DNA of 64,000 nt, taken from Macrostomum lignano. Lineage: Eukaryota. The position numbers were made by a program, and so were the translations under genes. A model generated the notes under the pieces. That model saw only the letters and a program-made list of their open reading frames with translations. It ran no database searches and was not told the origin of the DNA. The DNA lies in assembly GCA_002269645.1 (NCBI GenBank), contig NIVC01001415.1, positions 32,870 through 96,869 on the forward strand. The letters are read 5' to 3'. The stretch's first letter is position 1, and every line of letters starts with the position of its first letter. This document shows positions 8,583 to 39,125 of the stretch, one piece after another.

Positions 8583-8663
<81 letters not shown>

Positions 8664-16552: not shown

Positions 16553-17735
16553 CTAATCGCTAATATCTGACACTAATATCAGCCTAATCAGTGTCAGCAT
16601 GATCGCTAATATCTGACACTAATATCAGCCTTAATCAGTGTCAGCATGATCGCTAATATCTGACACTAATATCAGCCTAATCAGTGTCAGCATGATCGCT
16701 AATATCTGACACTAATATCAGCCTAATCAGTGTCAGCATGATCGCTAATATCTGACACTAATATCAGCCTTAATCAGTGTCAGCATGATCGCTAATATCT
16801 GACACTAATATCAGCCTAATCAGTGTCAGCATGATCGCTAATATCTGACACTAATATCAGCCTAATCAGTGTCAGCATGATCGCTAATATCTGACACTAA
16901 TATCAGCCTTAATCAGTGTCAGCATGATCGCTAGTATCTGACACTAATATCAGCCTTAATCAGTGTCAGCATGATCGCTAATATCTGACACTAATATCAG
17001 CCTTAATCAGTGTCAGCATGATCGCTAGTATCTGACACTAATATCAGCCTTAATCAGTGTCAGCATGATCGCTAATATCTGACACTGATATCAGCCTAAT
17101 CAGTGTCAGCATGATCGCTAATATCTGACACTAATATCGGCCTTAATCAGTGTCAGCATGATCGCTAATATCTGACACTAATATCAGCCTTAATCAGTGT
17201 CAGCATGATCGCTAATATCTGACACTAATATCAGCCTTAATCAGTGTCAGCATGATCGCTAATATCTGACACTAATATCAGCCTAATCAGTGTCAGCATG
17301 ATCGCTAATATCTGACACTAATATCAGCCTAATCAGTGTCAGCATGATCGCTAATATCTGACACTAATATCGGCCTTAATCAGTGTCAGCATGATCGCTA
17401 GTATCTGACACTAATATCAGCCTTAATCAGTGTCAGCATGATCGCTAGTATCTGACACTAATATCAGCCTTAATCAGTGTCAGCATGATCGCTAGTATCT
17501 GACACTAATATCAGCCTTAATCAGTGTCAGCATGATCGCTAGTATCTGACACTAATATCAGCCTTAATCAGTGTCAGCATGATCGCTAATATCTGACACT
17601 AATATCGGCCTAAATCAGTGTCAGCATGATTGCTAATATCTGACACTAATATCAGCCTAAATCAGTGTCAGCATGATTGCTAATATCTGACACTAATATC
17701 AGCCTAAATCAGTGTCAGCATGATCGCTAATATCA
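16553..17735. repeat. 46/47-bp satellite between GBF1 and CTNS
   Basis: About 25 units TAATATCTGACACTAATATCAGCC(T)TAATCAGTGTCAGCATGATCGC; internal inverted repeat AGTGTCAG/CTGACACT. Confidence 0.95.
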
Positions 17736-18529
17736 CTAGTATCCGTCTCAATTGCTGAGTTAGTGTCAGATAACTACCTAGTGGGTGTCAGAGGACCAAA
17801 AGTTGGTGTCAGATTTGGCTCCATTATATTGAGGGCCATCTGACACGAATTCATTGAAGTAACGCCCTGCTCGGTTCTAAGCATGAATGATCATCCGCCT
17901 TGCCCGTTTTCATTGGTTTCTGGGAATCGCTTACTCAATGCGGAAATGCCGACTTCATGGGCTTCGGCTCTGGCGCAATTCTAAAGTACTATCACTATAT
18001 TATTTATTAATATCGTTAACAAGTTTATATGCTCGATATTCACTACTTATGCGTGCACATTTTTGGTCAGTAGTATATAGCAGCGGGTGTTGTAAACGTG
18101 AATAATTTTATTAATCACCCAGTACTGTAGTTGTCAGGCTGACAGCAGTGTCACACTATGCTTCTGTTTGTGCTGGTTATACCGTCTTCTCAGCCTGATT
18201 CTATCTGTCGATTGTGTTGTCCTCTCGTGTCCAAGCCTCGTTTTTGTGCCCCCCTTCCCCCCTGTTATAATTGTTTTCTTACAGATGACAGACAAATATA
18301 AATTCAGAGGAAATCTTTCTTGCTTTTTGAAGCTGTCCGGATTGGCGTATTGGAGACTGAAACAGCTGTGATTGCTTTTTTGTCTTCATTGCTAATTAAA
18401 TAGTTTAGCCAGCAGATTAACAATACGACACGAGAATCGCTTTATTTTACAATTTTGGACTGCCAAAATAGGTTGAAAAAAGGCCCTATTATTCTACTTA
18501 TCAGTAGTGCAGCATTTTCTATCTTGCAG

Positions 18530-21500
18530 ATGCTGCTGCCGTTGCTCGTGCTCAGCCTGCTTGCCGCACAGACTGCAGCCCAGTCAGACAATGTCACCCG
18601 CATCGGCGCCCAGTTCCTGGACTCTTCCGTCAGCCTGACTGTTGGCAGGTCAGCTCACCTGTCCATCAGTCTCAATCAGTCATTCTCAGCCGGTGACTAC
18701 CTGTACTTCACCTACCAGGCCGACTCTCAGTCACCGGTGCTGCCCTATCAGGAGCGCCAGGTTGTGCTGCCTCTGCCGGCTGTTTACCTGCCCCCCAATG
18801 CCACCGCGGCTGAGCTCAACCTCACCGGCTGGGATGCTGGCCGCCTCAGCATTGGAGTGAACTCCACCAACCCGGACTTCTTCAACAACCACAGCGTCTT
18901 TGTCCGGGTCACCGTGGCTAAGAGTGACGTCATTGACGACTTCAACTTTGTGGTCGGCATTCTGTACGTGGTGCTCTGGTCCATGTCGTTTTACCCGCAG
19001 ACTGTGCTCAACTATAGACGGAAGTGAGTTTTCTCATTTGAGTCCTCTGTGCTGTGAGGTTCCTTGAGTCCTCTGTGCTGTGAGGTTCCTTGAGTCCTCT
19101 GTGCTGTGAGGTTCCTTGAGTCCTCTGTGCTGTGAGGTTCCTTGAGTCCTCTGTGCTGTGAGGTTCCTTGAGTCCTCTGTGCTGTGAGTCCTCTGTGATA
19201 ACTCACACAGGGGCTAAGGCTAGGATTAGGCTAAGATTAGGGTTAGGGTTTTTTATTAGAGGCAGGGGGGTTGTGTGCACTCTGGTGCACTTTAAGCGAC
19301 ATTGGCACACAACCGGCGAGAGGCATTGCTGCCCATTCCGCCGACTCCCCTGAGCAGGCATACAAGCGCGCGGATACATACGCAGGCACACACTCACACA
19401 GGAGTGTACAGCGGCCCTAACTTTATTTTATCGTTAGGCATGTACACTTCACTGCGCCTTGGGGGGTTGGCTCTCAAGGCCGTTAATTGCACGAGCAGAG
19501 CCAAGCCGAGATTCCAATTCAGCCCCAAATTAATGTGACTGCACTTGGAATCGAGCCTGGGTCGCTGGCACATCAGAGCAGCTGCGCTACCGCTGGGCTA
19601 CGCCCCCCCTTAGGGTTAGGGTTAGGGTTGGCAGTCAAATGGCTGGCCGTCAACAGTCACAGACCCCAGTCCAGCTGTGGTGGGGGCTGCAGTCCAGCCA
19701 TGCCGCACCCGCAGGTCGGTGGTTGGCCTCAACTTCGACTTCATCGGGCTGAACCTGCTGGGCTTCTGCGCCTACGCGGCCTTCAACGTGTGCCTGTACT
19801 GGGTGGCGCCGGTGCAGGAGCTGTACTTCAGGCGGCATCCGCGCGGCGTCATCCCCGTGGAAATCGCCGACGTGGTGTTCACTTTGCACGCAGTTGTCAT
19901 CACCTCTGTGCAGGTGAGAAAGTCACTGGTTGCCAGATCAGAGTCTGCAGCCGGGAGAGAATGCTGATGAGCACTACTAAGTAGGTGCGCAATTCAAAAA
20001 CGAAGGTTCTTCAGAAGTAAAAAAATAGAAAACTGATCGAACGTCATTGCTTGTCCAACTGGGGCATTGCTCTAAAAGAAGACAGAGCATTGTTATACAA
20101 TTATTTTGCCTTTAAAACTTGAGGATTTTTGTGAGGTGTACATGCGTATTCTTGGAAGAGCGGATTAAAGGTAAAAGCGGTTCAAATATATCAGTTGCAG
20201 TCTGCAATGCTTGCTCAGACTCTTGTGCCATTGGATCGTCATCAAATTTATCCGATATTTCAATCGCTGTCACCCCCACCGGGATCGCCAGGTGGTTCAG
20301 TGCTGCCTGTACGAGCGCGGCGGGCAGCGGGTGTCCCTGACTGCCCGCCTGCTGCTGGCCGCGATGCTGCTGTTCCTGCTGGCTGCCCTGCTGGTGTCCG
20401 CCTTCTGGCAGGCCGGCTTCGACTGGCTCAACTATCTGTACTGCGTGTCCTATGTGAAGCTGACCGTCACCCTCATCAAGTACTCGCCTCAGGCTTACAT
20501 GAACTACAAGTAAGTGGCTTAGGTGGCTCTGCTCCCGTTTGCCCCGCCTCTGACTACAGTTTGGTGGCTCTGATGCCCTCACATCGCTAACCTTACCGAC
20601 CATAGCTTATCTTGCGCTCATTTCTTCACATAGCCCTCCATCTTTCCATATTCATTTTCTATCTTCCCACACTCCTTTCCACCTTCCCACACTCCTCCCC
20701 ATCTTCCCACATACATCCCTACCTTCCCACACTCCTTCCCATCTTCCCACATACATCCCTACCTTCCCACACTCCTTCCCATCTTCCCACATACATTCCT
20801 ACCTTCCCACACTCCTCCCCATCTTCCCACATACATCCCTACCTTCCCACACTCCTTCCCATCTTCCCACATACATCCCTACCTTCCCACACTCCTTCCC
20901 ATCTTCCCACATACATCCCTACCTTCCCACACTCCTTCCCATCTTCCCACATACATTCCTACCTTCCCACACTCCTTCCCATCTTCCCACATACATCCCT
21001 ACCTTCCCACACTCCTTCCCATCTTCCCACATACATTCCTACCTTCCCACACTCCTTCCCATCTTCCCACATGCATTCCTACCTTCCCACACTCCTTCCC
21101 ATCTTCCCACACTGCACTCATTCTCCCTATCTAGATCTTACCGCATCCCTCGTCTTTTCCCGCTGCTTCTTAATTCACATCCTCCTAGGCATGCCTTCCC
21201 ATCCTTAGACCCAGGCTCCAACCTTTCCTTCCCAACTGAACTCCACACGCTCCCCAGACGGCAGTCGACAGACGGCTGGTCCATCGGGACGATCTTCACC
21301 GACTTCAGCGGCGGCGCGCTCAGCATCCTGCAGATGATGCTGCTGGCCTACAACTACAACGACTGGCCCTCCATCATGGGCGACCCGACCAAGTTCGGCC
21401 TGGGGCTGGTCTCCATCCTGTACGACTGCGTCTTCTTCGTGCAGCACTACGGGCTCTACGGCGAGCCGGCGAGGCGGCGGCGACAGCGACGGCTGCTGCG

Positions 21501-22295: not shown

Positions 22296-22959
22296 CTGCT
22301 TAGAGATAATTTGTGTTCTATTATCCAGCTCTTAGACGCAATAATGTCTCAAATGTACCTGCTTTTTCGTCTGCTGATTTTTTGCGCGCTTATTTATTCA
22401 TGCAAATATGACAGTCGAAAGTCCGCACCAAGTGTGCTTATATACTACTTTACCAAGTAGCCTCTGCTTGTCTGATTTGACTTGCTAGGATAAATCAACA
22501 GGGTTGAAATTTTGCGCAGACAAACCTGCTGCTCTTATGGCCTTTCGACTGTGTGCAGCATCTCAACTGTATGCCAATCTGGTCAGCAATCTCATGCTCA
22601 CTATCTAAATCGAATGCTATTACTGATGCTTATGATAAGTTGTATTGCTATCTGTACTTTTCAATCAATTGATGGATGGACTGTACTGCAGAACTAAAAT
22701 TTATTTTTGAGTCAGTATTTTTTGCGCGTTACTTGCGTTTCTTTTGATTAAAAATTAAGAAACAGAGCACTGTGCAATGTTTTGTAGCCACTTCGCAAAA
22801 TTTTGTCTGTCAGAATTCCTGATATTTTTAAATATATTTATACTACTGTAAGTAGATCTTATTGCTTTCTATTTTAGACTGCAACATCTGAAATCATTGC
22901 TAAATATTATTTGCATAAGATTTCTGTTATTTTGGGGGATTTGAGACCCTAAATTGAAT

Positions 22960-24028
22960 TTGGGATTTGAGATTCCCTCATCCGATTGGGGATTTGGGAT
23001 TCCCTCATCAAATTGGGGTTTTTGGGATTCCCTCATCCAATTGGGGATTTGGGATTCCCTCATCCGATTGGGGATTTGGGATTCCCTCATCCAATTGGGG
23101 ATTTGGGATTCCCTCATCCAATTGGGGTTTTTGGGATTCCTTCATCCAATTGGGAATTTTGGATTCCCTCATCCAATTGGGGATTTGGGATTCCCTCATC
23201 AAATTGGGGATTTGGGATTCCCTCATCAAATTGGGGATTTGGGATTCCCTCATCAAATTGGGGATTTGGGATTCCCTCATCCAATTGGGGATTTGGGATT
23301 CCTTCATCAAATTGGGGATTTGGGATTCCCTCATCAAATTGGGGATTTGGGATTCCCTCATCAAATTGGGGATTTGGGATTCCCTCATCCAATTGGGGAT
23401 TTGGGATTCCCTCATCAAATTGGGGATTTGGGATTCCCTCATCAAATTGGGGATTTGGGATTCCCTCATCCAATTGGGGATTTGGGATTCCCTCATCAAA
23501 TTGGGGATTTGGGATTCCCTCATCCAATTGGGGATTTGGGATTCCCTCATCAAATTGGGGTTTTTGGGATTCCCTCATCCAATTGGGGATTTGGGATTCC
23601 CTCATCCGATTGGGGATTTGGGATTCCTTCATCCAATTGGGGATTTGGGATTCCTTCATCCAATTGGGGATTTGGGATTCCTTCATCCGATTGGGGATTT
23701 GGGATTCCTTCATCCGATTGGGGATTTGGGATTCCTTCATCCAATTGGGGATTTGGGATTCCCTCATCAAATTGGGGATTTGGGATTCCCTCATCAAATT
23801 GGGGATTTGGGATTCCCTCATCAAATTGGGGATTTGGGATTCCCTCATCAAATTGGGGATTTGGGATTCCCTCATCAAATTGGGGATTTGGGATTCCCTC
23901 ATCAAATTGGGGATTTGGGATTCCCTCATCCAATTGGGGATTTGGGATTCCCTCATCAAATTGGGGATTTGGGATTCCCTCATCAAATTGGGGATTTGGG
24001 ATTCCCTCATCAAATTGGGGATTTGGGA
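22960..24028. repeat. 27-bp minisatellite (TGGGGATTTGGGATTCCCTCATCAAAT)
   Basis: About 39 units; explains the ~360-aa spurious ORFs on both strands. Confidence 0.95.
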
Positions 24029-24782: not shown

Positions 24783-27407
24783 ATGTCGGACCTCGAGTTC
24801 CCCAGGTGGGGCCACATCTCGGTCGGCTCCGAGGCCACCGAGTCCGCCGCTGCCTTGAAGCCTGCCGCGGGCGCCGCCGGGCCGCTCGAGCTGAGCTTTC
24901 ACACGTCGGACATGAGCACCCGCGGCAGCAGCACCAGCAGCAGCGGCAGGACTGTGGTTCAGCATCTCGTCACCGTCACCGACTCCGCCAGCTCCGGCGC
25001 CAGTTGCCCTAGCAACAATCTCCATAGCAACGCGGTTCGCCTCCCGGAGCCGGTCACTTCGTCGACGGACGAATCGACGATCGCCTTCCGCCTGCCGGTG
25101 ACGGACCTGCGCGATGTCGACGACTCGACTACGACGTCGACTTCCAATTATCAGGCCGCTGCTTTCGAGCCGCCTGTGCAGCCTTCGAGAGCCGCTCCGG
25201 TGGCGCAAGTCGGTCAGCCGTCGGATCGCACCGCGCCAGCCCTGGCCGTCGCCGGCCCCTGCCGAGTGGTCGCTGCACGGCGGTTGCCGAGTTTCACAAA
25301 AACTGGTCGAGTCGTGAGTTGCAGAAACAGACTTTGGGGGTATTTTCAGGGTGTCGCATGCGCTCTGTCTGCAGTAAGTGAAGCCTAGTGAGTAAACAAC
25401 TGACGCCCCAATACTGGCATCAAACAGAGAAACCGCCCACTCTGCTAAGCCCACTTCCATTTTGTGACTTGATTGACATTCCATTTGGTCTCTAAAAAGT
25501 CTAAAAAGGCCCGCTTTGAAGACAGCAAAACTGCAGGATAGTCTATAAAGCCATGCGGCTTCCAACGCAAACACCTTCAATGCCTTTTTGCAGCCGAAGA
25601 CCTCAGCCAGCAGTCGGCTTCGTCGCCCAGTCACTCGTCGCTGCAGCCGCGCGCCCAGCCCGTGCACTCCGTCCGTTTCGCCTTGGACAACATCGGCAGC
25701 CGCGCCGGCGGCGGCAGCAGCGGCGTCTTCCATCGGCCTCGGGGCGACTGCGGCAGGGCCGAGCTGCGCCGTCTGGCGCCACGATTCCCGATCTGGAGCG
25801 AGGCCGGCGTCACCGACACAAACGTTGCCAACGCGTCGAAAGTTGCAACACCTCCGCCGCCGATGCCGAAAGCGGCCGCGCCCGCAGCCGCCGCTCCAGT
25901 CGCCTCCGCCAAGAAGGTTGACAAAGACAGGTCAACGGGCTCGCAGTCCTGCTGCAGCGACTGCTCGCCGCTTCGCGTCCTCGGCCTGATGGTCTATTAC
26001 CTTACCATATGGGCCGTGAGCGCCGGCTTCACCTGGCTGCTGCTGGAGGCCTCCTTGATGCTCACCAGCCGGGGCAGCTTCCCCTATTACATGTCGCCGC
26101 ACTCGTTCTGCCTCTCCAGCCCCAGCATCGGATTTCCGGGTGGCAACCCGGAGCCCGGCAAGGTCACCGAGTTCGAAAACCTGGCCAGTCTCAGCCAGAC
26201 TCTGCGCCAGAAATTGATAAGCAATTTTTTACAGCCTGAAGCACCGAAGATGAGGCAGTGCGATGCTGGGAGCGAGGAGACTGTGGACTCAGACCTGCTC
26301 ATGCAGCCCTGCAATCTGACGCTGTTTGCTCATGCTGCCATCAGCCAGGTTGAGACCCTGCTCAAGGACAGACCAGCTGTGTTCGTAAAGGTTAGAATCT
26401 TGATTAGACTACGGGAGCTTTCTTCCTATGAGCAGCCGCGGTTCTCTCAATAACAGCCTTTCTCCACTCCTTAAGCAACATCTCTTTACTAAGCAGCCTC
26501 TTCACTCCCTGAGCAGCCTCTTCACTCCCTGAGCAGCCTCTTCACTCCCTGAGCAGCCTCTTCACTCCCTGAGCAGCCTCTTCACTCCCTGAGCAGCCTC
26601 TTCACTCCCTGAGCAGCCTCTTCACTCCCTGAGCAGCCTCTTCACTCCCTGAGCAGCCTCTTCACTCCCTAAGCAGCCTCTTCACTCCCTGAGCAGCCTC
26701 TTCACTCCCTGAGCAGCCTCTTCACTCCCTGAGCAGCCTCTTCACTCCCTGAGCAGCCTCTTCACTCCCTAAGCAGCCTCTTCACTCCCTGAGCAGCCTC
26801 TTCACTCACTGAGCAGCCTCTTCACTCCCTGAGCAGCCTCTTCACTCCCTAAGCAGCCTCTTCACTCCCTGAGCAGCCTCTTCACTCACTGAGCAGCCTC
26901 TTCACTCCCTAAGCAGCCTCTTCACTCACTGAGCAGCCTCTTCACTCCCTAAGCAGCCTCTTCACTCCCTAAGCAGCCTCTTCACTCCCTGAGCAGCCTC
27001 TTCACTCCCTGAGCAGCCTCTTCACTCCCTGAGCAGCCTCTTCACTCCCTGAGCAGCCTCTTTCTCCCCGCTGCAACTGGCAGATCAAGCGCCACCTGGG
27101 CTACCTGCCGGCCACCGGTGCTCACGTGACCATCACCTGCAAGGCCAGCACTTCAGCCGGCAGTGTCTCGCTGCGCTACTACAGCTGGAATGACAGCAAG
27201 TTGGTGGAGTCCGAGTCGTTTGGCAGCGTGCCAACTCTGTACTTCCCCATGCTGAGCCGGTGGCACAACGCGCCCGCCGTGCTGGTGTCGCTGGCCAAGG
27301 CCGACAGCTCCGTGTGGAGCGGCAAGGAGCTGAAGATCAACTGCCAGGCCTCTGACGGCGGGAACTCGAAGCCGCCTGAACGGGAGGTCATCCTGAAGAT
27401 CGGGTAG
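24783..27407 (+). CDS. Divergent Na+/K+-ATPase beta-subunit-like type II membrane protein, ~547 aa
   Basis: Exons 24783-25305 (first exon and its donor less certain), 25594-26390, 27084-27407, in frame. Single TM VLGLMVYYLTIWAVSAGFTWLLL followed by PYY..SPSIGFP (cf. beta-subunit PKY..PGLGFRP), PAVFVKIKRHLGYLP (cf. PCVFLKLNRIIGWxP), ITC, GSVPTLYFPM (cf. GFPxxYYPY), LKINCQA. Confidence 0.72.
26497..27060. repeat. 20-bp minisatellite (GAGCAGCCTCTTCACTCCCT) in beta-subunit-like intron 2
   Basis: About 28 near-identical units. Confidence 0.95.
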
Positions 27408-27689: not shown

Positions 27690-27800
27690 TGCTACAGGAC
27701 CAGAGGCCCCAGTCTCACAGCTACAGGACCAGAGGCCCCTGCAGTCTCACAGCTACAGGACCAGAGGCCCCAGTCTCACAGCTACAGGACCAGAGGCCCC
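27690..27800. repeat. ~29-bp tandem duplication overlapping the glycosyltransferase stop codon
   Basis: Four copies of GCTACAGGACCAGAGGCCCC. Confidence 0.85.
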
Positions 27801-29768
27801 AGCCTCATTCGCACTCGCAGCTGCATATTCGGGTCAATGTAGTTCTCGCTCAGCTGCCTGGACAAAGTGTTGTGCTCGCAGATCCACTCGCCGTGCCCCT
27901 TACGGTAGAGCAGCCGTTTCCTGTACAAGGAGGCCATCCGGTAGAAGGTCAGGCCCTGGAAGCAGGTGACCACCTTCACCGGGGCGCTGACCCCGCTGTG
28001 CAGCACCGCCTCGCTCCGCGCCTGATCGGTGTCCAGCCGCAGGTCGCCGCCTTCCTTGACGTGACCGGTAACGTCGGCCGGCGGCAGACGCAGCGTGCAG
28101 GGGTCGTAGATGGTGCGCCGGCCCCAGTGGTAATAGAAGCTGCTGGCGCACAGCGAGTCCAGCCGCGGCCTAGCATGGAAGAAGTACAGGCCCTGCAGGA
28201 TGGAGGCCAGGTCCCAGTCGGCCCAGTGCAGATCCGGGTCCAAGGCCAGCAGCAGCGAGTGGTTGGCAGCCAGGCGGCTGTACGCGAAGGCCAGCAGCTG
28301 GTTGCGGAGCGCCGACATCAGCTGAACGCGCTCGAGTTCCTCCAGGAGGCTTCGCTTCAGCCTGGGGCCGGGTTGGTGCCGTTTGCCAGTAGAGTAGGAT
28401 GCGTTCAGGCGGCAAGGCTCCGGCGAGTTGATGCGCCCGCAGCCGAGGAGGGTGGCGGAGACCCGGCTGGTGCTGGAGGAGCCGAGGTCGCTGGTCAGCT
28501 GATGCAGGCGCTGCCGGGTTTCGTCACTGGAGTCGTTCTCGAGGAAGACCAGGCTGCACCGGGCAAACTTGCCGCACAGGCGGAGCAAGTTCGAGATGGT
28601 TGTGTCCAGGCCTGCGGGATGGCGGAGTTTGCAATGTATTTGCACAACCTCACCATGCCCAAACATTTCTCAATCCTCACAGCAGGTGCTAAACCCTCCT
28701 AAACAGTTGCTCAACCCTCCTAAACGTGTGCTCAACCCTCCTAAACAGTTGCTCAACCCTCCTAAACGTGTGCTCAACCCTCCTAAACGTGTGCTCAACC
28801 CTCCTAAACAGTTGCTCAACCCTCCTAAACAGTTGCTCAACCCTCCTAAAAATTTGCTCAACCCTCCTAAACAGTTGCTCAACCCTCCAAAACAGTTGCT
28901 CAACCCTCCTAAACAGTTGCTCAACCCTCCTAAAAATTTGCTCAACCCTCCTAAACAGTTGCTCAACCCTCCAAAACAGTTGCTCAACCCTCCTAAACAG
29001 TTGCTCAACCCTCCTAAAAATTTGCTCAACCCTCCTAAACAGTTGCTCAACCCTCCAAAACAGTTGCTCAACCCTCCTAAACAGTTGCTCAACCCTCCTA
29101 AACAGTTGCTCAACCCCACTAAACGGGTGCCCAACCCTACTAAACGGGTGCTCAATCCTACTAAACGTGTGCTCAACCCTATTAAACGTGTGCTCAACCC
29201 TATTAAACGTGTGCTCAACCCTATTAACGTGTGCTCAACCCTATTAAACGTGTGCTCAACCCTATTAAACGTGTGCTCAACCCTATTAAACGTGTGCTCA
29301 ACCCTCACAGCAGCCGCCTCCTTCACCTGGCATGGCGTTGCGAGCTGTAGCCACAACCGCCAGCGACTGGGTGCTCAGCCAGCGCTCAGCCTGCGCCACC
29401 CGATACTCTGCAGACTCCTCAGCCGCAGACAGCCGCATCAGCGGTAGTTTGGTGCCCAGCTGGTCCATCCAGTGCAAGGCCGAGTCCATATGCCGCTCGG
29501 CCAGCCTGTAGAAGTGCTCGAAATTGTTGAAGTTCCTGGCCAGCTGCTCGTCCGAGTCGCCGACGCCGTCCCCAGCTGTCAGCGGCAGCGAGCGGACCTT
29601 GGCGCGCAGGAAGTCGGCGGCTTTTTCGTCGGTCACCTCCGTTTCACCGGCGGATGGCAGAAACCTGCCGCCGGCTCCGAAGAGCACCGAAACGCAGAGC
29701 AGCGACAGCAGGCCGGACAGCAGAGGTGCCCGTCGCAGCTTTCGATAAAAGCAGCTTGAGCTGACCAT
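27782..29768 (-). CDS. Type II membrane GT-A glycosyltransferase, CAP59/GT69-like, 2 exons, ~423 aa
   Basis: Exons 29768-29327 and 28611-27782, phase 1, GT-AG; an alternative same-phase donor lies at 29308. N-terminal signal-anchor LLSGLLSLLCVSVLFG. Motifs VVATARN..LDTTISNL, VFLENDSSDETRQRL, LRNQLL, LDPDL (DxD), IYDPCTLR, PVKVVTCFQGLTFYR, CEH, YIDPNM. Confidence 0.8.
28690..29300. repeat. 21-bp minisatellite (CTCAACCCTCCTAAACAGTTG) in glycosyltransferase intron
   Basis: About 29 units grading into the CTCAACCCTATTAAACGTGTG variant. Confidence 0.93.
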
Positions 29769-30693: not shown

Positions 30694-33600
30694 GACAAGT
30701 GCCTACGCCTGGTAACTGGTCTCTAGTGTCGTTTCAAACGGTTTGTTGCACAAGTCTAGTGATTTTGACAAGTGCCTAGTAACTGGTCTCTAGTGCCGTT
30801 TCAAACGGTTTGTTGCACAAGTCTAGTGATTTTGACAAGTGCCTAGTAACTGGTCTCTAGTGCCGTTTCAAACGGTTTGTTGCACAAGTCTAGTGATTTT
30901 GACAAGTGCTAAGTAACTGGTCTCTAGTGCCGTTTCAAACGGTTTGTTGCACAAGTCTAGTGATTTTGACAAGTGCCTAGTAACTGGTCTCTAGTGCCGT
31001 TTCAAACGGTTTGTTGCACAAGTCTAGTGATTTTGACAAGTGCCTAGTAACTGGTCTCTAGTGCCGTTTCAAACGGTTTGTTGCACAAGTCTAGTGATTT
31101 TGACAAGTGCCTAGTAACTGGTCTCTAGTGCCGTTTCAAACGGTTTGTTGCACAAGTCTAGTGATTTTGACAAGTGCCTAGTAACTGGTCTCTAGTGCCG
31201 TTTCAAACGGTTTGTTGCACAAGTCTAGTGATTTTGACAAGTGCCTAGTAACTGGTCTCTAGTGCCGTTTCAAACGGTTTGTTGCACAAGTCTAGTGATT
31301 TTGACAAGTGCCTAGTAACTGGTCTCTAGTGCCGTTTCAAACGGTTTGTTGCACAAGTCTAGTGATTTTGACAAGTGCCTAGTAACTGGTCTCTAGTGCC
31401 GTTTCAAACGGTTTGTTGCACAAGTCTAGTGATTTTGACAAGTGCTAAGTAACTGGTCTCTAGTGCCGTTTCAAACGGTTTGTTGCACAAGTCTAGTGAT
31501 TTTGACAAGTGCCTAGTAACTGGTCTCTAGTGCCGTTTCAAACGGTTTGTTGCACAAGTCTAGTGATTTTGACAAGTGCCTAGTAACTGGTCTCTAGTGC
31601 CGTTTCAAACGGTTTGTTGCACAAGTCTAGTGATTTTGACAAGTGCCTAGTAACTGGTCTCTAGTGCCGTTTCAAACGGTTTGTTGCACAAGTCTAGTGA
31701 TTTTGACAAGTGCCTAGTAACTGGTCTCTAGTGCCGTTTCAAACGGTTTGTTGCACAAGTCTAGTGATTTTGACAAGTGCCTAGTAACTGGTCTCTAGTG
31801 CCGTTTCAAACGGTTTGTTGCACAAGTCTAGTGATTTTGACAAGTGCCTAGTAACTGGTCTCTAGTGCCGTTTCAAACGGTTTGTTGCACAAGTCTAGTG
31901 ATTTTGACAAGTGCCTAGTAACTGGTCTCTAGTGCCGTTTCAAACGGTTTGTTGCACAAGTCTAGTGATTTTGACAAGTGCCTAGTAACTGGTCTCTAGT
32001 GCCGTTTCAAACGGTTTGTTGCACAAGTCTAGTGATTTTGACAAGTGCTAAGTAACTGGTCTCTAGTGCCGTTTCAAACGGTTTGTTGCACAAGTCTAGT
32101 GATTTTGACAAGTGCTAAGTAACTGGTCTCTAGTGCCGTTTCAAACGGTTTGTTGCACAAGTCTAGTGATTTTGACAAGTGCTAAGTAACTGGTCTCTAG
32201 TGCCGTTTCAAACGGTTTGTTGCACAAGTCTAGTGATTTTGACAAGTGCCTAGTAACTGGTCTCTAGTGCCGTTTCAAACGGTTTGTTGCACAAGTCTAG
32301 TGATTTTGACAAGTGCCTAGTAACTGGTCTCTAGTGCCGTTTCAAACGGTTTGTTGCACAAGTCTAGTGATTTTGACAAGTGCCTAGTAACTGGTCTCTA
32401 GTGCCGTTTCAAACGGTTTGTTGCACAAGTCTAGTGATTTTGACAAGTGCCTAGTAACTGGTCTCTAGTGCCGTTTCAAACGGTTTGTTGCACAAGTCTA
32501 GTGATTTTGACAAGTGCCTAGTAACTGGTCTCTAGTGCCGTTTCAAACGGTTTGTTGCACAAGTCTAGTGATTTTGACAAGTGCCTAGTAACTGGTCTCT
32601 AGTGCCGTTTCAAACGGTTTGTTGCACAAGTCTAGTGATTTTGACAAGTGCTAAGTAACTGGTCTCTAGTGCCGTTTCAAACGGTTTGTTGCACAAGTCT
32701 AGTGATTTTGACAAGTGCCTAGTAACTGGTCTCTAGTGCCGTTTCAAACGGTTTGTTGCACAAGTCTAGTGATTTTGACAAGTGCCTAGTAACTGGTCTC
32801 TAGTGCCGTTTCAAACGGTTTGTTGCACAAGTCTAGTGATTTTGACAAGTGCTAAGTAACTGGTCTCTAGTGCCGTTTCAAACGGTTTGTTGCACAAGTC
32901 TAGTGATTTTGACAAGTGCCTAGTAACTGGTCTCTAGTGCCGTTTCAAACGGTTTGTTGCACAAGTCTAGTGATTTTGACAAGTGCCTAGTAACTGGTCT
33001 CTAGTGCCGTTTCAAACGGTTTGTTGCACAAGTCTAGTGATTTTGACAAGTGCTAAGTAACTGGTCTCTAGTGCCGTTTCAAACGGTTTGTTGCACAAGT
33101 CTAGTGATTTTGACAAGTGCCTAGTAACTGGTCTCTAGTGCCGTTTCAAACGGTTTGTTGCACAAGTCTAGTGATTTTGACAAGTGCCTAGTAACTGGTC
33201 TCTAGTGCCGTTTCAAACGGTTTGTTGCACAAGTCTAGTGATTTTGACAAGTGCCTAGTAACTGGTCTCTAGTGCCGTTTCAAACGGTTTGTTGCACAAG
33301 TCTAGTGATTTTGACAAGTGCCTAGTAACTGGTCTCTAGTGCCGTTTCAAACGGTTTGTTGCACAAGTCTAGTGATTTTGACAAGTGCCTAGTAACTGGT
33401 CTCTAGTGCCGTTTCAAACGGTTTGTTGCACAAGTCTAGTGATTTTGACAAGTGCCTAGTAACTGGTCTCTAGTGCCGTTTCAAACGGTTTGTTGCACAA
33501 GTCTAGTGATTTTGACAAGTGCCTAGTAACTGGTCTCTAGTGCCGTTTCAAACGGTTTGTTGCACAAGTCTAGTGATTTTGACAAGTGCCTAGTAACTGG

Positions 33601-36600
33601 TCTCTAGTGCCGTTTCAAACGGTTTGTTGCACAAGTCTAGTGATTTTGACAAGTGCCTAGTAACTGGTCTCTAGTGCCGTTTCAAACGGTTTGTTGCACA
33701 AGTCTAGTGATTTTGACAAGTGCCTAGTAACTGGTCTCTAGTGCCGTTTCAAACGGTTTGTTGCACAAGTCTAGTGATTTTGACAAGTGCCTAGTAACTG
33801 GTCTCTAGTGCCGTTTCAAACGGTTTGTTGCACAAGTCTAGTGATTTTGACAAGTGCCTAGTAACTGGTCTCTAGTGCCGTTTCAAACGGTTTGTTGCAC
33901 AAGTCTAGTGATTTTGACAAGTGCCTAGTAACTGGTCTCTAGTGCCGTTTCAAACGGTTTGTTGCACAAGTCTAGTGATTTTGACAAGTGCCTAGTAACT
34001 GGTCTCTAGTGCCGTTTCAAACGGTTTGTTGCACAAGTCTAGTGATTTTGACAAGTGCCTAGTAACTGGTCTCTAGTGCCGTTTCAAACGGTTTGTTGCA
34101 CAAGTCTAGTGATTTTGACAAGTGCTAAGTAACTGGTCTCTAGTGCCGTTTCAAACGGTTTGTTGCACAAGTCTAGTGATTTTGACAAGTGCCTAGTAAC
34201 TGGTCTCTAGTGCCGTTTCAAACGGTTTGTTGCACAAGTCTAGTGATTTTGACAAGTGCCTAGTAACTGGTCTCTAGTGCCGTTTCAAACGGTTTGTTGC
34301 ACAAGTCTAGTGATTTTGACAAGTGCCTAGTAACTGGTCTCTAGTGCCGTTTCAAACGGTTTGTTGCACAAGTCTAGTGATTTTGACAAGTGCCTAGTAA
34401 CTGGTCTCTAGTGCCGTTTCAAACGGTTTGTTGCACAAGTCTAGTGATTTTGACAAGTGCCTAGTAACTGGTCTCTAGTGCCGTTTCAAACGGTTTGTTG
34501 CACAAGTCTAGTGATTTTGACAAGTGCCTAGTAACTGGTCTCTAGTGCCGTTTCAAACGGTTTGTTGCACAAGTCTAGTGATTTTGACAAGTGCCTAGTA
34601 ACTGGTCTCTAGTGCCGTTTCAAACGGTTTGTTGCACAAGTCTAGTGATTTTGACAAGTGCCTAGTAACTGGTCTCTAGTGCCGTTTCAAACGGTTTGTT
34701 GCACAAGTCTAGTGATTTTGACAAGTGCCTAGTAACTGGTCTCTAGTGCCGTTTCAAACGGTTTGTTGCACAAGTCTAGTGATTTTGACAAGTGCCTAGT
34801 AACTGGTCTCTAGTGCCGTTTCAAACGGTTTGTTGCACAAGTCTAGTGATTTTGACAAGTGCCTAGTAACTGGTCTCTAGTGCCGTTTCAAACGGTTTGT
34901 TGCACAAGTCTAGTGATTTTGACAAGTGCCTAGTAACTGGTCTCTAGTGCCGTTTCAAACGGTTTGTTGCACAAGTCTAGTGATTTTGACAAGTGCTAAG
35001 TAACTGGTCTCTAGTGCCGTTTCAAACGGTTTGTTGCACAAGTCTAGTGATTTTGACAAGTGCCTAGTAACTGGTCTCTAGTGCCGTTTCAAACGGTTTG
35101 TTGCACAAGTCTAGTGATTTTGACAAGTGCCTAGTAACTGGTCTCTAGTGCCGTTTCAAACGGTTTGTTGCACAAGTCTAGTGATTTTGACAAGTGCCTA
35201 GTAACTGGTCTCTAGTGCCGTTTCAAACGGTTTGTTGCACAAGTCTAGTGATTTTGACAAGTGCCTAGTAACTGGTCTCTAGTGCCGTTTCAAACGGTTT
35301 GTTGCACAAGTCTAGTGATTTTGACAAGTGCCTAGTAACTGGTCTCTAGTGCCGTTTCAAACGGTTTGTTGCACAAGTCTAGTGATTTTGACAAGTGCCT
35401 AGTAACTGGTCTCTAGTGCCGTTTCAAACGGTTTGTTGCACAAGTCTAGTGATTTTGACAAGTGCCTAGTAACTGGTCTCTAGTGCCGTTTCAAACGGTT
35501 TGTTGCACAAGTCTAGTGATTTTGACAAGTGCCTAGTAACTGGTCTCTAGTGCCGTTTCAAACGGTTTGTTGCACAAGTCTAGTGATTTTGACAAGTGCC
35601 TAGTAACTGGTCTCTAGTGCCGTTTCAAACGGTTTGTTGCACAAGTCTAGTGATTTTGACAAGTGCCTAGTAACTGGTCTCTAGTGCCGTTTCAAACGGT
35701 TTGTTGCACAAGTCTAGTGATTTTGACAAGTGCCTAGTAACTGGTCTCTAGTGCCGTTTCAAACGGTTTGTTGCACAAGTCTAGTGATTTTGACAAGTGC
35801 CTAGTAACTGGTCTCTAGTGCCGTTTCAAACGGTTTGTTGCACAAGTCTAGTGATTTTGACAAGTGCCTAGTAACTGGTCTCTAGTGCCGTTTCAAACGG
35901 TTTGTTGCACAAGTCTAGTGATTTTGACAAGTGCCTAGTAACTGGTCTCTAGTGCCGTTTCAAACGGTTTGTTGCACAAGTCTAGTGATTTTGACAAGTG
36001 CCTAGTAACTGGTCTCTAGTGCCGTTTCAAACGGTTTGTTGCACAAGTCTAGTGATTTTGACAAGTGCCTAGTAACTGGTCTCTAGTGCCGTTTCAAACG
36101 GTTTGTTGCACAAGTCTAGTGATTTTGACAAGTGCCTAGTAACTGGTCTCTAGTGCCGTTTCAAACGGTTTGTTGCACAAGTCTAGTGATTTTGACAAGT
36201 GCCTAGTAACTGGTCTCTAGTGCCGTTTCAAACGGTTTGTTGCACAAGTCTAGTGATTTTGACAAGTGCCTAGTAACTGGTCTCTAGTGCCGTTTCAAAC
36301 GGTTTGTTGCACAAGTCTAGTGATTTTGACAAGTGCCTAGTAACTGGTCTCTAGTGCCGTTTCAAACGGTTTGTTGCACAAGTCTAGTGATTTTGACAAG
36401 TGCCTAGTAACTGGTCTCTAGTGCCGTTTCAAACGGTTTGTTGCACAAGTCTAGTGATTTTGACAAGTGCCTAGTAACTGGTCTCTAGTGCCGTTTCAAA
36501 CGGTTTGTTGCACAAGTCTAGTGATTTTGACAAGTGCCTAGTAACTGGTCTCTAGTGCCGTTTCAAACGGTTTGTTGCACAAGTCTAGTGATTTTGACAA

Positions 36601-38790
36601 GTGCCTAGTAACTGGTCTCTAGTGCCGTTTCAAACGGTTTGTTGCACAAGTCTAGTGATTTTGACAAGTGCCTAGTAACTGGTCTCTAGTGCCGTTTCAA
36701 ACGGTTTGTTGCACAAGTCTAGTGATTTTGACAAGTGCCTAGTAACTGGTCTCTAGTGCCGTTTCAAACGGTTTGTTGCACAAGTCTAGTGATTTTGACA
36801 AGTGCCTAGTAACTGGTCTCTAGTGCCGTTTCAAACGGTTTGTTGCACAAGTCTAGTGATTTTGACAAGTGCCTAGTAACTGGTCTCTAGTGCCGTTTCA
36901 AACGGTTTGTTGCACAAGTCTAGTGATTTTGACAAGTGCCTAGTAACTGGTCTCTAGTGCCGTTTCAAACGGTTTGTTGCACAAGTCTAGTGATTTTGAC
37001 AAGTGCCTAGTAACTGGTCTCTAGTGCCGTTTCAAACGGTTTGTTGCACAAGTCTAGTGATTTTGACAAGTGCCTAGTAACTGGTCTCTAGTGCCGTTTC
37101 AAACGGTTTGTTGCACAAGTCTAGTGATTTTGACAAGTGCCTAGTAACTGGTCTCTAGTGCCGTTTCAAACGGTTTGTTGCACAAGTCTAGTGATTTTGA
37201 CAAGTGCCTAGTAACTGGTCTCTAGTGCCGTTTCAAACGGTTTGTTGCACAAGTCTAGTGATTTTGACAAGTGCCTAGTAACTGGTCTCTAGTGCCGTTT
37301 CAAACGGTTTGTTGCACAAGTCTAGTGATTTTGACAAGTGCCTAGTAACTGGTCTCTAGTGCCGTTTCAAACGGTTTGTTGCACAAGTCTAGTGATTTTG
37401 ACAAGTGCCTAGTAACTGGTCTCTAGTGCCGTTTCAAACGGTTTGTTGCACAAGTCTAGTGATTTTGACAAGTGCCTAGTAACTGGTCTCTAGTGCCGTT
37501 TCAAACGGTTTGTTGCACAAGTCTAGTGATTTTGACAAGTGCCTAGTAACTGGTCTCTAGTGCCGTTTCAAACGGTTTGTTGCACAAGTCTAGTGATTTT
37601 GACAAGTGCCTAGTAACTGGTCTCTAGTGCCGTTTCAAACGGTTTGTTGCACAAGTCTAGTGATTTTGACAAGTGCCTAGTAACTGGTCTCTAGTGCCGT
37701 TTCAAACGGTTTGTTGCACAAGTCTAGTGATTTTGACAAGTGCTAAGTAACTGGTCTCTAGTGCCGTTTCAAACGGTTTGTTGCACAAGTCTAGTGATTT
37801 TGACAAGTGCCTAGTAACTGGTCTCTAGTGCCGTTTCAAACGGTTTGTTGCACAAGTCTAGTGATTTTGACAAGTGCCTAGTAACTGGTCTCTAGTGCCG
37901 TTTCAAACGGTTTGTTGCACAAGTCTAGTGATTTTGACAAGTGCCTAGTAACTGGTCTCTAGTGCCGTTTCAAACGGTTTGTTGCACAAGTCTAGTGATT
38001 TTGACAAGTGCCTAGTAACTGGTCTCTAGTGCCGTTTCAAACGGTTTGTTGCACAAGTCTAGTGATTTTGACAAGTGCCTAGTAACTGGTCTCTAGTGCC
38101 GTTTCAAACGGTTTGTTGCACAAGTCTAGTGATTTTGACAAGTGCCTAGTAACTGGTCTCTAGTGCCGTTTCAAACGGTTTGTTGCACAAGTCTAGTGAT
38201 TTTGACAAGTGCCTAGTAACTGGTCTCTAGTGCCGTTTCAAACGGTTTGTTGCACAAGTCTAGTGATTTTGACAAGTGCCTAGTAACTGGTCTCTAGTGC
38301 CGTTTCAAACGGTTTGTTGCACAAGTCTAGTGATTTTGACAAGTGCCTAGTAACTGGTCTCTAGTGCCGTTTCAAACGGTTTGTTGCACAAGTCTAGTGA
38401 TTTTGACAAGTGCCTAGTAACTGGTCTCTAGTGCCGTTTCAAACGGTTTGTTGCACAAGTCTAGTGATTTTGACAAGTGCCTAGTAACTGGTCTCTAGTG
38501 CCGTTTCAAACGGTTTGTTGCACAAGTCTAGTGATTTTGACAAGTGCCTAGTAACTGGTCTCTAGTGCCGTTTCAAACGGTTTGTTGCACAAGTCTAGTG
38601 ATTTTGACAAGTGCCTAGTAACTGGTCTCTAGTGCCGTTTCAAACGGTTTGTTGCACAAGTCTAGTGATTTTGACAAGTGCCTAGTAACTGGTCTCTAGT
38701 GCCGTTTCAAACGGTTTGTTGCACAAGTCTAGTGATTTTGACAAGTGCCTAGTAACTGGTCTCTAGTGCCGTTTCAAACGGTTTGTTGCA
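30694..38790. repeat. 67-bp satellite array, ~121 copies, running into the assembly gap
   Basis: Unit GACAAGTGCCTAGTAACTGGTCTCTAGTGCCGTTTCAAACGGTTTGTTGCACAAGTCTAGTGATTTT; period confirmed by the same register at 30841 and 34861 (60 x 67). Confidence 0.98.
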
Positions 38791-39125
38791 NNNNNNNNNN
38801 NNNNNNNNNNNNNNNNNNNNNNNNNNNNNNNNNNNNNNNNNNNNNNNNNNNNNNNNNNNNNNNNNNNNNNNNNNNNNNNNNNNNNNNNNNNNNNNNNNNN
38901 NNNNNNNNNNNNNNNNNNNNNNNNNNNNNNNNNNNNNNNNNNNNNNNNNNNNNNNNNNNNNNNNNNNNNNNNNNNNNNNNNNNNNNNNNNNNNNNNNNNN
39001 NNNNNNNNNNNNNNNNNNNNNNNNNNNNNNNNNNNNNNNNNNNNNNNNNNNNNNNNNNNNNNNNNNNNNNNNNNNNNNNNNNNNNNNNNNNNNNNNNNNN
39101 NNNNNNNNNNNNNNNNNNNNNNNNN
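38791..39125. other. Assembly gap (335 N)
   Basis: Run of n characters. Confidence 1.

Follow-up and report, generated by a model that had tools for sequence, protein, structure and literature searches.

A viral-type glycosyltransferase family in the flatworm Macrostomum lignano, probably acquired by horizontal transfer

Results

A two-exon gene among host genes

We analyse a 64-kb stretch of the Macrostomum lignano genome (the window), in which a glycosyltransferase gene on the minus strand lies beside Sec7/HUS and PQ-loop exons. The gene runs from an ATG at 29768 to a stop codon at 27784-27782 and consists of two exons, defined from open reading frames and their translation. Exon 1 (29327..29768, minus strand) contains the start codon, the predicted cytoplasmic tail, signal anchor and stem, and the first strand of the catalytic domain (residues 1-147 and the first base of codon 148). 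Exon 2 (27782..28611, minus strand) completes the GT-A catalytic domain and ends with the stop codon. Joined in frame, the 442 and 830 nt of the two exons make 1272 nt, which encode 423 amino acids with no internal stop. The conserved catalytic domain (residues ~135-415, as delimited by the profile matches of relatives and by the AF2 model) spans 27809..29366 on the minus strand, intron included.

Between the exons lies a single intron of 715 nt (28612..29326, minus strand) with spliceosomal-type GT..AG ends; the donor reads CCAG/GTGAAG, with the final exon base at 29327, and the acceptor CCGCAG/G, with the opening exon base at 28611. Sequence comparison supports splicing at 29327/28611: intronless paralogues span the junction without a gap in the alignment, a tblastn search with one of them (P0002) breaks exactly at both exon ends (the exon 1 match stops at 29331), and an M. 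lignano gene model in UniRef with 97% identity (P0001) uses the same junction. The two-exon gene of the original prediction, at 27782-29768 and with its frame intact across a GT..AG intron, is thus found as it had been drawn. A search of the 64-kb window for extra gene copies or pseudogene fragments found none.

Most of the intron (624 of its 715 nt) is occupied by a 21-bp minisatellite of about 30 copies (28683..29306, unstranded, found with TRF), and a direct repeat, GCTGTGAGG, borders this array at either end. A pattern search finds seven matches to this repeat in the window, compared with 0.71 expected, and two of the seven are those that flank the intronic array. Another tandem repeat, of 29 bp and 3.9 copies (27691..27807, unstranded, TRF), covers the final eight codons and continues through the stop codon into the 3' UTR, and the residues beyond 415 at the C-terminus of the window protein have no counterpart in the paralogues. 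Minisatellites inside introns are common across the window, the neighbouring Sec7 gene included.

Paralogues and a private intron

The close relatives of the window gene are M. lignano paralogues, which fall into at least eight groups. The four paralogues that we checked are all single-exon genes on contigs of 46 to 832 kb, where they adjoin tubulin, CHD1, CLCA/VWA and NIF. The GC3 of the glycosyltransferase genes (0.71-0.85) resembles that of host exons, and the gene is physically integrated in the host genome. We reject an endogenous giant-virus insertion block around the gene, since the neighbours of the window gene and of the four paralogues are ordinary animal genes. In the databases, the M. 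lignano members of the family are presently labelled merely 'hypothetical protein' or generic 'GT2'.

None of the four checked paralogues has the intron, and two environmental/SRA copies run continuously across the intron site as well. The intron is private to the window copy, in keeping with the earlier suggestion that the gene had gained it. Two split matches from the JGI metagenomes with the appearance of further intron-bearing copies (L055 and L079) are actually tandem paralogues on AT-rich viral-like contigs. A minisatellite-filled private intron in an otherwise intronless family provides a clean small case of recent intron gain.

Conserved motifs and the predicted fold

A hydrophobic signal anchor lies at residues 14-32 (29673..29729, minus strand), with a Kyte-Doolittle mean of 2.06 over 19 residues. 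The spliced product also contains every motif that had been named beforehand: A-R-N (residues 143-145), E172-N-D-S-S-D177 (codons at 28523..28540, minus strand), D272-P-D274 (DxD; 28232..28240, minus strand), Y-D-P-C-T-L-R (residues 316-322), P-V-K-V-V-T-C-F-Q-G-L-T-F-Y-R (residues 358-372), C392-E-H394 (27872..27880, minus strand) and I-D-P-N-M (residues 406-410). These matches are not due to chance, because most of them sit on invariant or nearly invariant columns of a 67-sequence family alignment. The most conserved motif of the family is E172-N-D-S-S-D177, a type of pattern that also served to find relatives; E172, N173, S175 and D177 are invariant, together with T179 and R180 just downstream. 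D274 and C392 are likewise invariant, and D272, E393 and H394 nearly so. The alignment has 11 invariant and 19 nearly invariant columns in total, and the window protein keeps nearly all of these, every invariant residue among them.

The AF2 model of the window protein (pLDDT 82.6, pTM 0.79) has a helix at residues 7-31 and, for most of residues 110-330 and 350-415, a pLDDT that exceeds 90. When this model is compared with the PDB using Foldseek, all significant matches are GT-A enzymes: the GT domain of COLGALT1 comes first (E=3.5e-7), and behind it rank heparosan and chondroitin synthases, RmlT and a chlorella-virus hyaluronan synthase, with TM-scores against solved structures of only ~0.3-0.45. 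Against BFVD, the best match is a MAG-derived glycosyltransferase of Marseillevirus LCMAC102 (E=3.4e-20, target TM 0.81), and Sylvanvirus and ChoanoV1 come next. By sequence, PDB chains give no usable match to either the single protein or an 11-sequence profile (best profile E 0.07), and an NCBIfam scan of the window protein returns nothing usable. Judged by its modelled structure, the window protein is a GT-A-fold glycosyltransferase.

The model and the anchor suggest a type II topology, in which the catalytic domain would be lumenal. D272-P-D274 we take, from general knowledge of GT-A enzymes, to be the DxD motif for metal and nucleotide sugar. E-N-D-S-x-D is the predicted functional counterpart of the nucleotide-sugar-binding motif of GT2. 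H394 may act as a third metal ligand, by analogy with Mn-dependent GT-A enzymes such as Cgm1 (PMC12493134).

Placement between two Pfam families

The only Pfam match of the window protein is to PF11735 (CAP59_mtransfer), with 27.5 bits and E=3e-6 over residues 147-387, covering profile positions 16-224 of 242. This score is 1.3 bits short of the gathering cut-off of the family (28.8 bits). Among the paralogues, P0006 reaches 17.0 bits and P0007 16.7 bits, and P0002, P0004, P0005 and P0156 give no match to PF11735. What stands of the proposed CAP59/GT69 assignment is therefore the resemblance, carried by the single Pfam match; strict membership does not hold, with the window protein below the cut-off and its paralogues lower still or without a match. 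For PF00535 (Glycos_transf_2), the window protein gives no match even at E<=10, and paralogue P0005 reaches only 13.5 bits for a cut-off of 23.3. Among 35 distant viral-type relatives, 31 match PF11735 (E<=0.01) and 25 match PF00535 (best E=1.6e-15), and some viral-type relatives bear PF11735 as a precomputed annotation. The family lies between CAP59_mtransfer (CAZy GT69) and Glycos_transf_2. The Pfam scan finds no match of the window protein to animal GT families.

Relatives in giant viruses and bacteria

A profile search over 1.84 billion representative sequences finds 814 relatives at E<=1e-3, of which 169 have E<=1e-10. The top matches are all from M. lignano or from short contigs without a name, within the flatworm clade; outside this clade, matches reach E=8.7e-36. 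Among the best 150 of the 814 relatives, the named proteins belong solely to M. lignano or to Marseilleviridae, and Macrostomum is the only animal with the family among these best-scoring matches. The named relatives were collected with a word-indexed search that used a domain-trimmed 11-sequence alignment. Those outside the flatworms are Marseilleviridae proteins annotated 'putative glycosyltransferase', from Noumeavirus, Kurlavirus, Insectomime virus, Tunisvirus, Lausannevirus, Brazilian marseillevirus and Golden marseillevirus. (With the full-length query or the 67-sequence alignment, the word-indexed search returned three to four matches, low-complexity anchors probably crowding the candidates.)

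Beyond the named proteins, relatives are present at 18 loci in IMG/VR, GVMAGs among them. Four relatives without a name have ORFan-dense, NCLDV-like surroundings, and one of these is flanked by more GT genes. A GTDB scan finds relatives at 15 loci in bacterial MAGs, whose carriers are Bacteroidota, Lewinella, Spirochaetia, Prevotella, Lachnospiraceae, Luteolibacter and Sphingomonas. The JGI metagenomes yield 147 matches, all with an identity of at most 32%, and no closer environmental relatives. Profile, structure and named matches agree that the window protein is related to GT-A proteins of giant viruses and bacteria and not to animal Golgi glycosyltransferases, as originally proposed.

The next relatives outside the flatworms have ~25% identity, a length of ~320 aa, the same motif order and an N-terminal anchor. 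An N-terminal hydrophobic segment is found in 137 of 151 full-length non-flatworm relatives, the Marseilleviridae proteins included, which speaks against the proposal that the gene acquired its Golgi-type anchor only once it had been transferred. (The called ORF of P0011, on a 1.3-kb metagenomic contig from ENA sample ERZ23498939, is without one.) The feature that distinguishes the flatworm proteins, which have 383-423 aa, is the stem: the median start of the conserved motif is residue 166, compared with 103 in the relatives, and the stem is ~60 residues longer than in viral-type relatives.

Position of the flatworm clade

We place these sequences in a neighbor-joining (NJ) tree with a simple distance correction and 200 bootstraps, which covers flatworm, virus-labelled, bacterial-MAG and metagenomic sequences. 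The flatworm clade is monophyletic in 200 of the 200 bootstraps and, in this tree without eukaryotic outgroups, is nested among virus-labelled sequences in 157. Its sister is the metagenomic sequence P0011, which carries no taxon label (150/200). The clade sits on a long stem, with ~25% identity to every outside sequence. An HMM built from flatworm sequences only scores the virus-labelled sequences at 137 to 73 bits, except for the IMG/VR sequence L020 at 51 bits, which is sister in the tree to L023, a bacterial-MAG contig; for true bacterial MAG copies the maximum is 76 bits. In the NJ tree the bacterial copies mostly branch at the base, and they are more distant than the viral ones.

Discussion

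The explanation that we consider the probable one is that the locus holds an intact two-exon gene for a type II GT-A enzyme, whose family goes back to a single horizontal transfer of an anchored, intronless viral-type gene and later expanded. Outside Macrostomum, the relatives that can be assigned come mainly from giant viruses (Marseilleviridae isolates and many metagenomic contigs of NCLDV-like character) and sparsely from bacteria, and therefore a horizontal transfer into the flatworm lineage, where the family then multiplied, is probable on sequence grounds. The horizontal acquisition put forward in the original prediction is thus likely, given the nesting among virus-labelled sequences, the host-gene neighbours and the restriction to Macrostomum among the animals found. 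Because most relatives have no taxon name, a protist source or an ancient transfer in the opposite direction is possible.

Vertical descent would make this an ancient opisthokont CAP59/GT69-like family that Macrostomum retained while almost every other animal lost it, and that giant viruses took up independently from their hosts. This could explain why the sole Pfam match is a fungal family, and it fits the long stem of the flatworm clade with only ~25% identity to viral sequences and a codon usage that is entirely host-like; eukaryotic members may also hide among the relatives without a taxon label. We nevertheless find it unlikely, as M. lignano is the sole named animal among both the best profile matches and the named word-search matches, the flatworm clade falls inside the virus-labelled radiation (157/200), and all four checked paralogues are intronless amid multi-exon host genes. 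Slightly less probable still is a bacterial or protist donor, with the viral copies as parallel acquisitions. The 15 bacterial MAG loci favour such a donor, as does the closest outside sequence, P0011, which is without a taxon label. However, the bacterial copies are mostly basal and score at most 76 bits, compared with up to 137 bits for viral ones, and at least two of the 'bacterial' contigs resemble viral sequence that was binned wrongly (L024 is nearly identical to the GVMAG L018, and L023 is sister to the IMG/VR sequence L020). Most bacterial copies also lack the ~320-aa layout of anchor plus domain, with 520 aa in L021 and L022, 618 in L035 and 826 in L033.

That the window copy is dead, an intronless paralogue split by a minisatellite-bearing insertion whose GT..AG ends are fortuitous, is very improbable. 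One might suspect it from an intron that is private to this copy and consists of a 21-bp tandem repeat over 624 of 715 nt, or from the second repeat, which overlaps the stop codon. Yet neither exon contains a stop or a frameshift, the protein retains every residue that is invariant in the family, the join is base-exact relative to the paralogues, the 97%-identical database gene model has the same junction, and minisatellites are common in the introns of the window, also in the neighbouring Sec7 gene. A family that is otherwise microbial or viral raises the question of contamination or mis-assembly, that is, of a microbial or viral contig misjoined to flatworm sequence. We give this almost no credence: the window gene contains a spliceosomal-type intron, its GC3 is host-like, its minisatellites are of the host type, and it sits between host genes in one 64-kb stretch. 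Its paralogues adjoin host genes on separate contigs that reach 832 kb.

If the single transfer of a viral-type gene is taken as the starting point, a sequence of events can be proposed. An intronless viral-type gene in which the membrane anchor was already present would have been acquired once by horizontal transfer. Afterwards its codon usage would have ameliorated toward that of the host, the stem would have grown longer and the gene would have multiplied into at least eight paralogue groups, and the window copy alone would have gained an intron that was later swollen by the minisatellite. In the protein, the N-terminal anchor would leave the ~100-residue stem and the catalytic domain on the lumenal side of the secretory pathway. 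On that side, E-N-D-S-x-D and D-P-D, probably with His394 of C-E-H, would bind a nucleotide sugar via a divalent cation, and the bound sugar would be passed to a glycan or protein acceptor. Any role in a mucus, adhesive or cuticle glycan is speculation. The fuller scenario, in which a giant-virus glycosyltransferase was captured by Macrostomum or the Macrostomorpha, kept active in at least eight paralogue groups and now builds a lineage-specific glycan, is a tentative one to which we give somewhat less than even chances.

Both the GT-A fold and the horizontal transfer of GT-A glycosyltransferases are already well known. To our knowledge, however, functional viral or microbial genes are rarely kept by animals, and hardly any case of a giant-virus donor is documented in bilaterians. 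In the literature on horizontal transfer and glycosyltransferases in Macrostomum, and on CAP59 together with giant viruses, we found no description of this family. Here the family is intact, multiplied and fully host-adapted in a laboratory model flatworm. If its viral origin is true, it would be a rare documented case of giant-virus gene domestication in a bilaterian, it would point to a past infection by Nucleocytoviricota of flatworms or of cells in close contact with the germ line, and it would offer an animal setting in which to probe the function of an uncharacterised viral GT family.

Comparison with known glycosyltransferases

The best solved-structure match, COLGALT1 (GLT25D1, GT25; PDB 9evj/9evk), is a human lumenal Mn-dependent GT-A galactosyltransferase domain that aligns to the window protein over ~295 columns. 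With 14-15% identity, a query TM of ~0.45 and a profile-to-sequence E of 0.25-0.3, this likeness is one of fold only and not of family membership. To GT2 (PF00535) the link is positional and structural: E-N-D-S-x-D of the window protein occupies the place of the GT2 nucleotide-binding motif, and its GT2-like structural matches are heparosan, chondroitin and hyaluronan synthases, TarS and ArnC (Foldseek PDB).

PF11735/GT69 shares with the window protein a type II membrane topology (predicted for the window protein), the GT-A fold and a DxD-type motif, but the score of the window protein (27.5 bits) is below 28.8 and the other paralogues have at most 17 bits or no match. The fungal GT69 enzymes Cmt1, Cap59 and Cap6 are listed as alpha-1,3-mannosyltransferases (PMC12493134), and the activity expected of a GT69 member is retaining alpha-mannosyl transfer from GDP-mannose. 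On the viral side, a study of tokyovirus (PMC12866637) lists five GT-like genes and, purely from homology, labels three as 'mannosyltransferase-like'.

The closest known system is that of the Marseilleviridae/NCLDV glycosyltransferases, for which we compare 335-aa Marseilleviridae proteins (Noumeavirus YP_009345506.1, Lausannevirus YP_004347072.1, Brazilian marseillevirus YP_009238584.1, Tunisvirus and others). We know of no biochemical function for these homologues. They have only 22-29% identity to the flatworm proteins, which differ from them in the ~60-residue longer stem and in an insertion of ~10-15 residues after L-G-C-G. The viral-type proteins are ~300-340 aa long with a short stem. 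The flatworm genes are nuclear and have host codon usage, and the window copy has an intron. What the viral proteins and the window protein have in common is their motif order, the conserved cysteines, the N-terminal anchor and a single GT-A domain.

Gene structure and splicing

The glycosyltransferase (GT) gene lies on the minus strand in two exons. Exon 1 (442 nt, 29768-29327) opens with an ATG at 29768 and ends at a consensus donor, CCAG/GTGAAG, whose last exon base is 29327; exon 2 (830 nt, 28611-27782) begins at 28611 behind the acceptor CCGCAG/G, which is canonical though poor in polypyrimidine, and closes with a TAG stop codon at 27784-27782. Exons of these lengths join in frame, and translating them together gives 423 aa with 0 internal stops. 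All of the motifs named in the original prediction are found in this spliced product, and the observation is confirmed. Three lines of sequence evidence agree on the junction. The alignment to intronless paralogues is gapless there (A-T-A-R-N-A-M-P/G-L-D-T-T in the window protein); the tblastn match of P0002, an M. lignano paralogue, is interrupted where the exons end, at 29331 and 28615; and P0001 (UniRef A0A1I8JDJ2), an M. lignano database protein with 97% identity, continues straight across this junction. Left unspliced, the exon 1 frame would stop 29 nt inside the intron, and exon 2 would have neither the anchor nor the first conserved strand.

Protein family and fold

The only Pfam match of the window protein is CAP59_mtransfer (PF11735; E=3e-6), at 27.5 bits, slightly below the family cut-off of 28.8 bits, so that the resemblance to CAP59 originally proposed stands while membership of GT69 is unproven. 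Searches by sequence against NCBIfam and PDB return no matches. An AlphaFold2 model based on 67 aligned sequences has good confidence (pLDDT 82.6, pTM 0.79; pLDDT >90 across most of residues 110-330 and 350-415), and the PDB entries that Foldseek matches to it are exclusively GT-A glycosyltransferases at modest TM-scores (0.3-0.45): the COLGALT1 GT25 domain (E=3.5e-7), heparosan and chondroitin synthases, RmlT, chlorella-virus hyaluronan synthase, ppGalNAc-T1 and TarS. No solved structure of the same family appears among the PDB matches, by sequence or by Foldseek. Far better than any PDB entry is a predicted viral structure, a Marseillevirus MAG glycosyltransferase (E=3.4e-20, target TM 0.81, 23% identity), followed by proteins of Sylvanvirus and ChoanoV1. 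On these Foldseek results, the modelled fold is GT-A.

Relatives in flatworms, viruses and metagenomes

Searching 1.84 billion representative proteins exhaustively with a profile (E<=1e-3) yields 814 relatives. The best matches are M. lignano proteins throughout, in several clusters (the BOX15_Mlig030790, 003076, 029645, 008975, 021081, 008488 and 033934 groups), with further relatives in Mlig031518, Mlig023516 and Mlig016746, and their identity to the window protein is 37-47%; the Macrostomum clade also takes in two short contigs, P0003 (JGI metagenome) and P0008 (SRA run). A copy of this clade, on a 1193-bp contig (L045, Logan SRR31628434), has 57-58% identity to P0002 and one frame shift, followed by a short tandem repeat; the shift could be an assembly error or mark a decaying paralogue from another sample or species. 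The literature searched holds no description of the family in Macrostomum.

Below a gap in score lie hundreds of proteins of ~320 aa with 20-30% identity and the same conserved positions. Among 35 distant relatives tested, PF11735 is found in 31 and PF00535 in 25, and the GT gene is best placed as a divergent member of an unnamed NCLDV-type (giant-virus) GT-A family between these two. The named distant relatives are each a ‘putative glycosyltransferase’ of Marseilleviridae isolates (Noumeavirus, Kurlavirus, Insectomime virus, Tunisvirus, Lausannevirus, Brazilian and Golden marseillevirus). IMG/VR contains 18 loci, GVMAG bins among them, and JGI metagenomes add 147 more relatives, each at <=32% identity. 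Four relatives lie on contigs of 52-476 kb whose context is NCLDV-like, with dense short ORFan genes alongside kinase, RING, NUDIX, FtsJ and Fapy-glycosylase genes, and one of the four is flanked by other glycosyltransferase genes. Scanning 185,579 bacterial and archaeal species genomes gives 15 loci, all in MAGs. Two of these, L024, nearly identical to the GVMAG locus L018, and L023, sister to the IMG/VR locus L020, probably represent, judging from these similarities, viral contigs mis-binned into GTDB genomes. The microbial or viral type of the family, as first proposed, is borne out by this range of non-flatworm carriers.

Two further features of the viral-type loci deserve mention. On L126 (Logan SRR30597339, 52 kb, NCLDV-like), in the stretch 9065-12392, the family member sits between a Gly_transf_sug (GT32-type) gene and, two genes downstream, a gene with a faint Glyco_transf_25 match, an arrangement that resembles a viral gene cluster for glycan synthesis. 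Two AT-rich (24-28% GC) metagenomic contigs each carry two tandem viral-type copies (L055, 2324-3603; L079, 33-1824), and therefore the family duplicates within viral genomes too.

Phylogeny, probable horizontal transfer and host integration

How did such a gene come to lie in a flatworm? A neighbour-joining tree (179 sequences, 266 trimmed columns, 200 bootstraps) recovers the flatworm clade as monophyletic in 200/200 bootstraps, with P0011, from a 1.3-kb contig of 37% GC, as its sister in 150/200. In 157/200 the flatworm clade groups with part of the virus-labelled sequences, and the bacterial outgroup stays outside. A flatworm-only HMM scores virus-labelled sequences at 137-73 bits, all but one (L020, 51 bits, which falls in the tree with the bacterial-MAG contig L023), and genuine bacterial copies at <=76 bits. 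These sequence comparisons favour a viral-type origin but fall short of proof, given a simple tree method, a long stem branch and a tree in which fungi and protists are missing.

The gene is integrated in the host. In the window, plus-strand exons of a large ARF-GEF (Sec7-like HUS domain and Sec7 start, GBF1/BIG type; 2589-3470 and 5977-6939, the Sec7/HUS-domain exons at 2.6-3.5 kb) lie upstream, on the strand opposite to the GT gene, with minisatellites between these exons. An ORF at 18455-19027 (plus strand) whose end matches a PQ-loop repeat (E=2e-6, ~18.9 kb) probably forms one exon of a gene for a transporter-type protein of lysosome or Golgi. On the minus strand, a 328-aa ATG-initiated ORF (41786-42772) has N-terminal signal-like and C-terminal hydrophobic segments and no Pfam match; from its sequence, it may encode a lineage-specific type I membrane protein. 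Paralogues are found on contigs of 46-832 kb, where their neighbours are tubulin, CHD1, CLCA/VWA and NIF-domain genes. GC3 in five GT coding sequences, at 0.71-0.85, matches that of host exons (0.73-0.79) and is far from the overall GC of the viral loci (0.26-0.52). Horizontal transfer, part of the original prediction, is on tree and integration together probable, if unproven, and a transfer from a giant virus to a bilaterian, with growth of the family in this model flatworm, is plausible.

The proposed gain of the anchor in the animal is refuted: an N-terminal hydrophobic segment is present in 137 of 151 full-length non-flatworm relatives, Marseilleviridae proteins included. The flatworm proteins differ in having ~60 additional stem residues (median start of the conserved E-N-D-S motif at residue 166, against 103 in non-flatworm relatives) and a few inserted residues behind the L-G-C-G motif.

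A private intron and its minisatellite

Intron gain, by comparison, holds up. All four paralogues whose loci were read are single-exon, and the intron site is uninterrupted in two environmental copies (one with a single frame shift); the intron is therefore private to the window copy and its near-twin, which fits an intronless ancestor and recent gain. Most of its 715 nt is a 21-bp minisatellite of ~30 copies (28683-29306), probably expanded within an originally short intron, because similar 20-30-bp arrays fill much of the window's left half. Both borders of the array carry the 9-mer GCTGTGAGG (28675-28683 and 29303-29311), present in the window in 7 copies against 0.71 expected, and it may mark how minisatellite arrays arise; the other five copies lie within a 26-bp tandem array at ~19.1 kb (19038-19188).

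The left half (1-27100) is crowded with minisatellites of 20-48 bp, for example at 5-1107, 3593-4001, 4625-5284, 6792-8712, 9116-10029, 12533-13222, 13492-14249, 16556-17734, 20661-21111, 22957-24028 and 26492-27062. One 28-bp family occurs at three separate sites and has the core CAGTTGCT in common with the 21-bp intron array, which suggests a dispersed family of minisatellite-seeding sequences. A 29-bp repeat (27691-27807) covers the last eight codons and stop of the GT gene, and less than 1 kb upstream of its start codon begins an 8-kb satellite of 67-bp units (30707-38790, ~121 copies, 99% matches) that leads into an assembly gap, a stretch of N at 38791-39125.

Predicted activity

By analogy with GT-A enzymes generally, E172-N-D-S-x-D177 and D272-P-D274 would bind a divalent cation together with the nucleotide sugar, and H394 is a likely third ligand. 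C205, C214, C392 and other conserved cysteines are compatible with a domain that is lumenal and disulfide-bonded. GT69 enzymes are listed as alpha-1,3-mannosyltransferases (PMC12493134), and three GT-like genes of tokyovirus are ‘mannosyltransferase-like’ by homology (PMC12866637); taken together, these suggest, at low confidence, a mannosyltransferase as the likeliest single activity. The role in mucus, adhesive or cuticle that the original prediction put forward is unsupported. Cgm1, a cryptococcal mannosyltransferase, is predicted to combine Asp-x-Asp and His in a way comparable to D272-P-D274 and H394 (PMC12493134).
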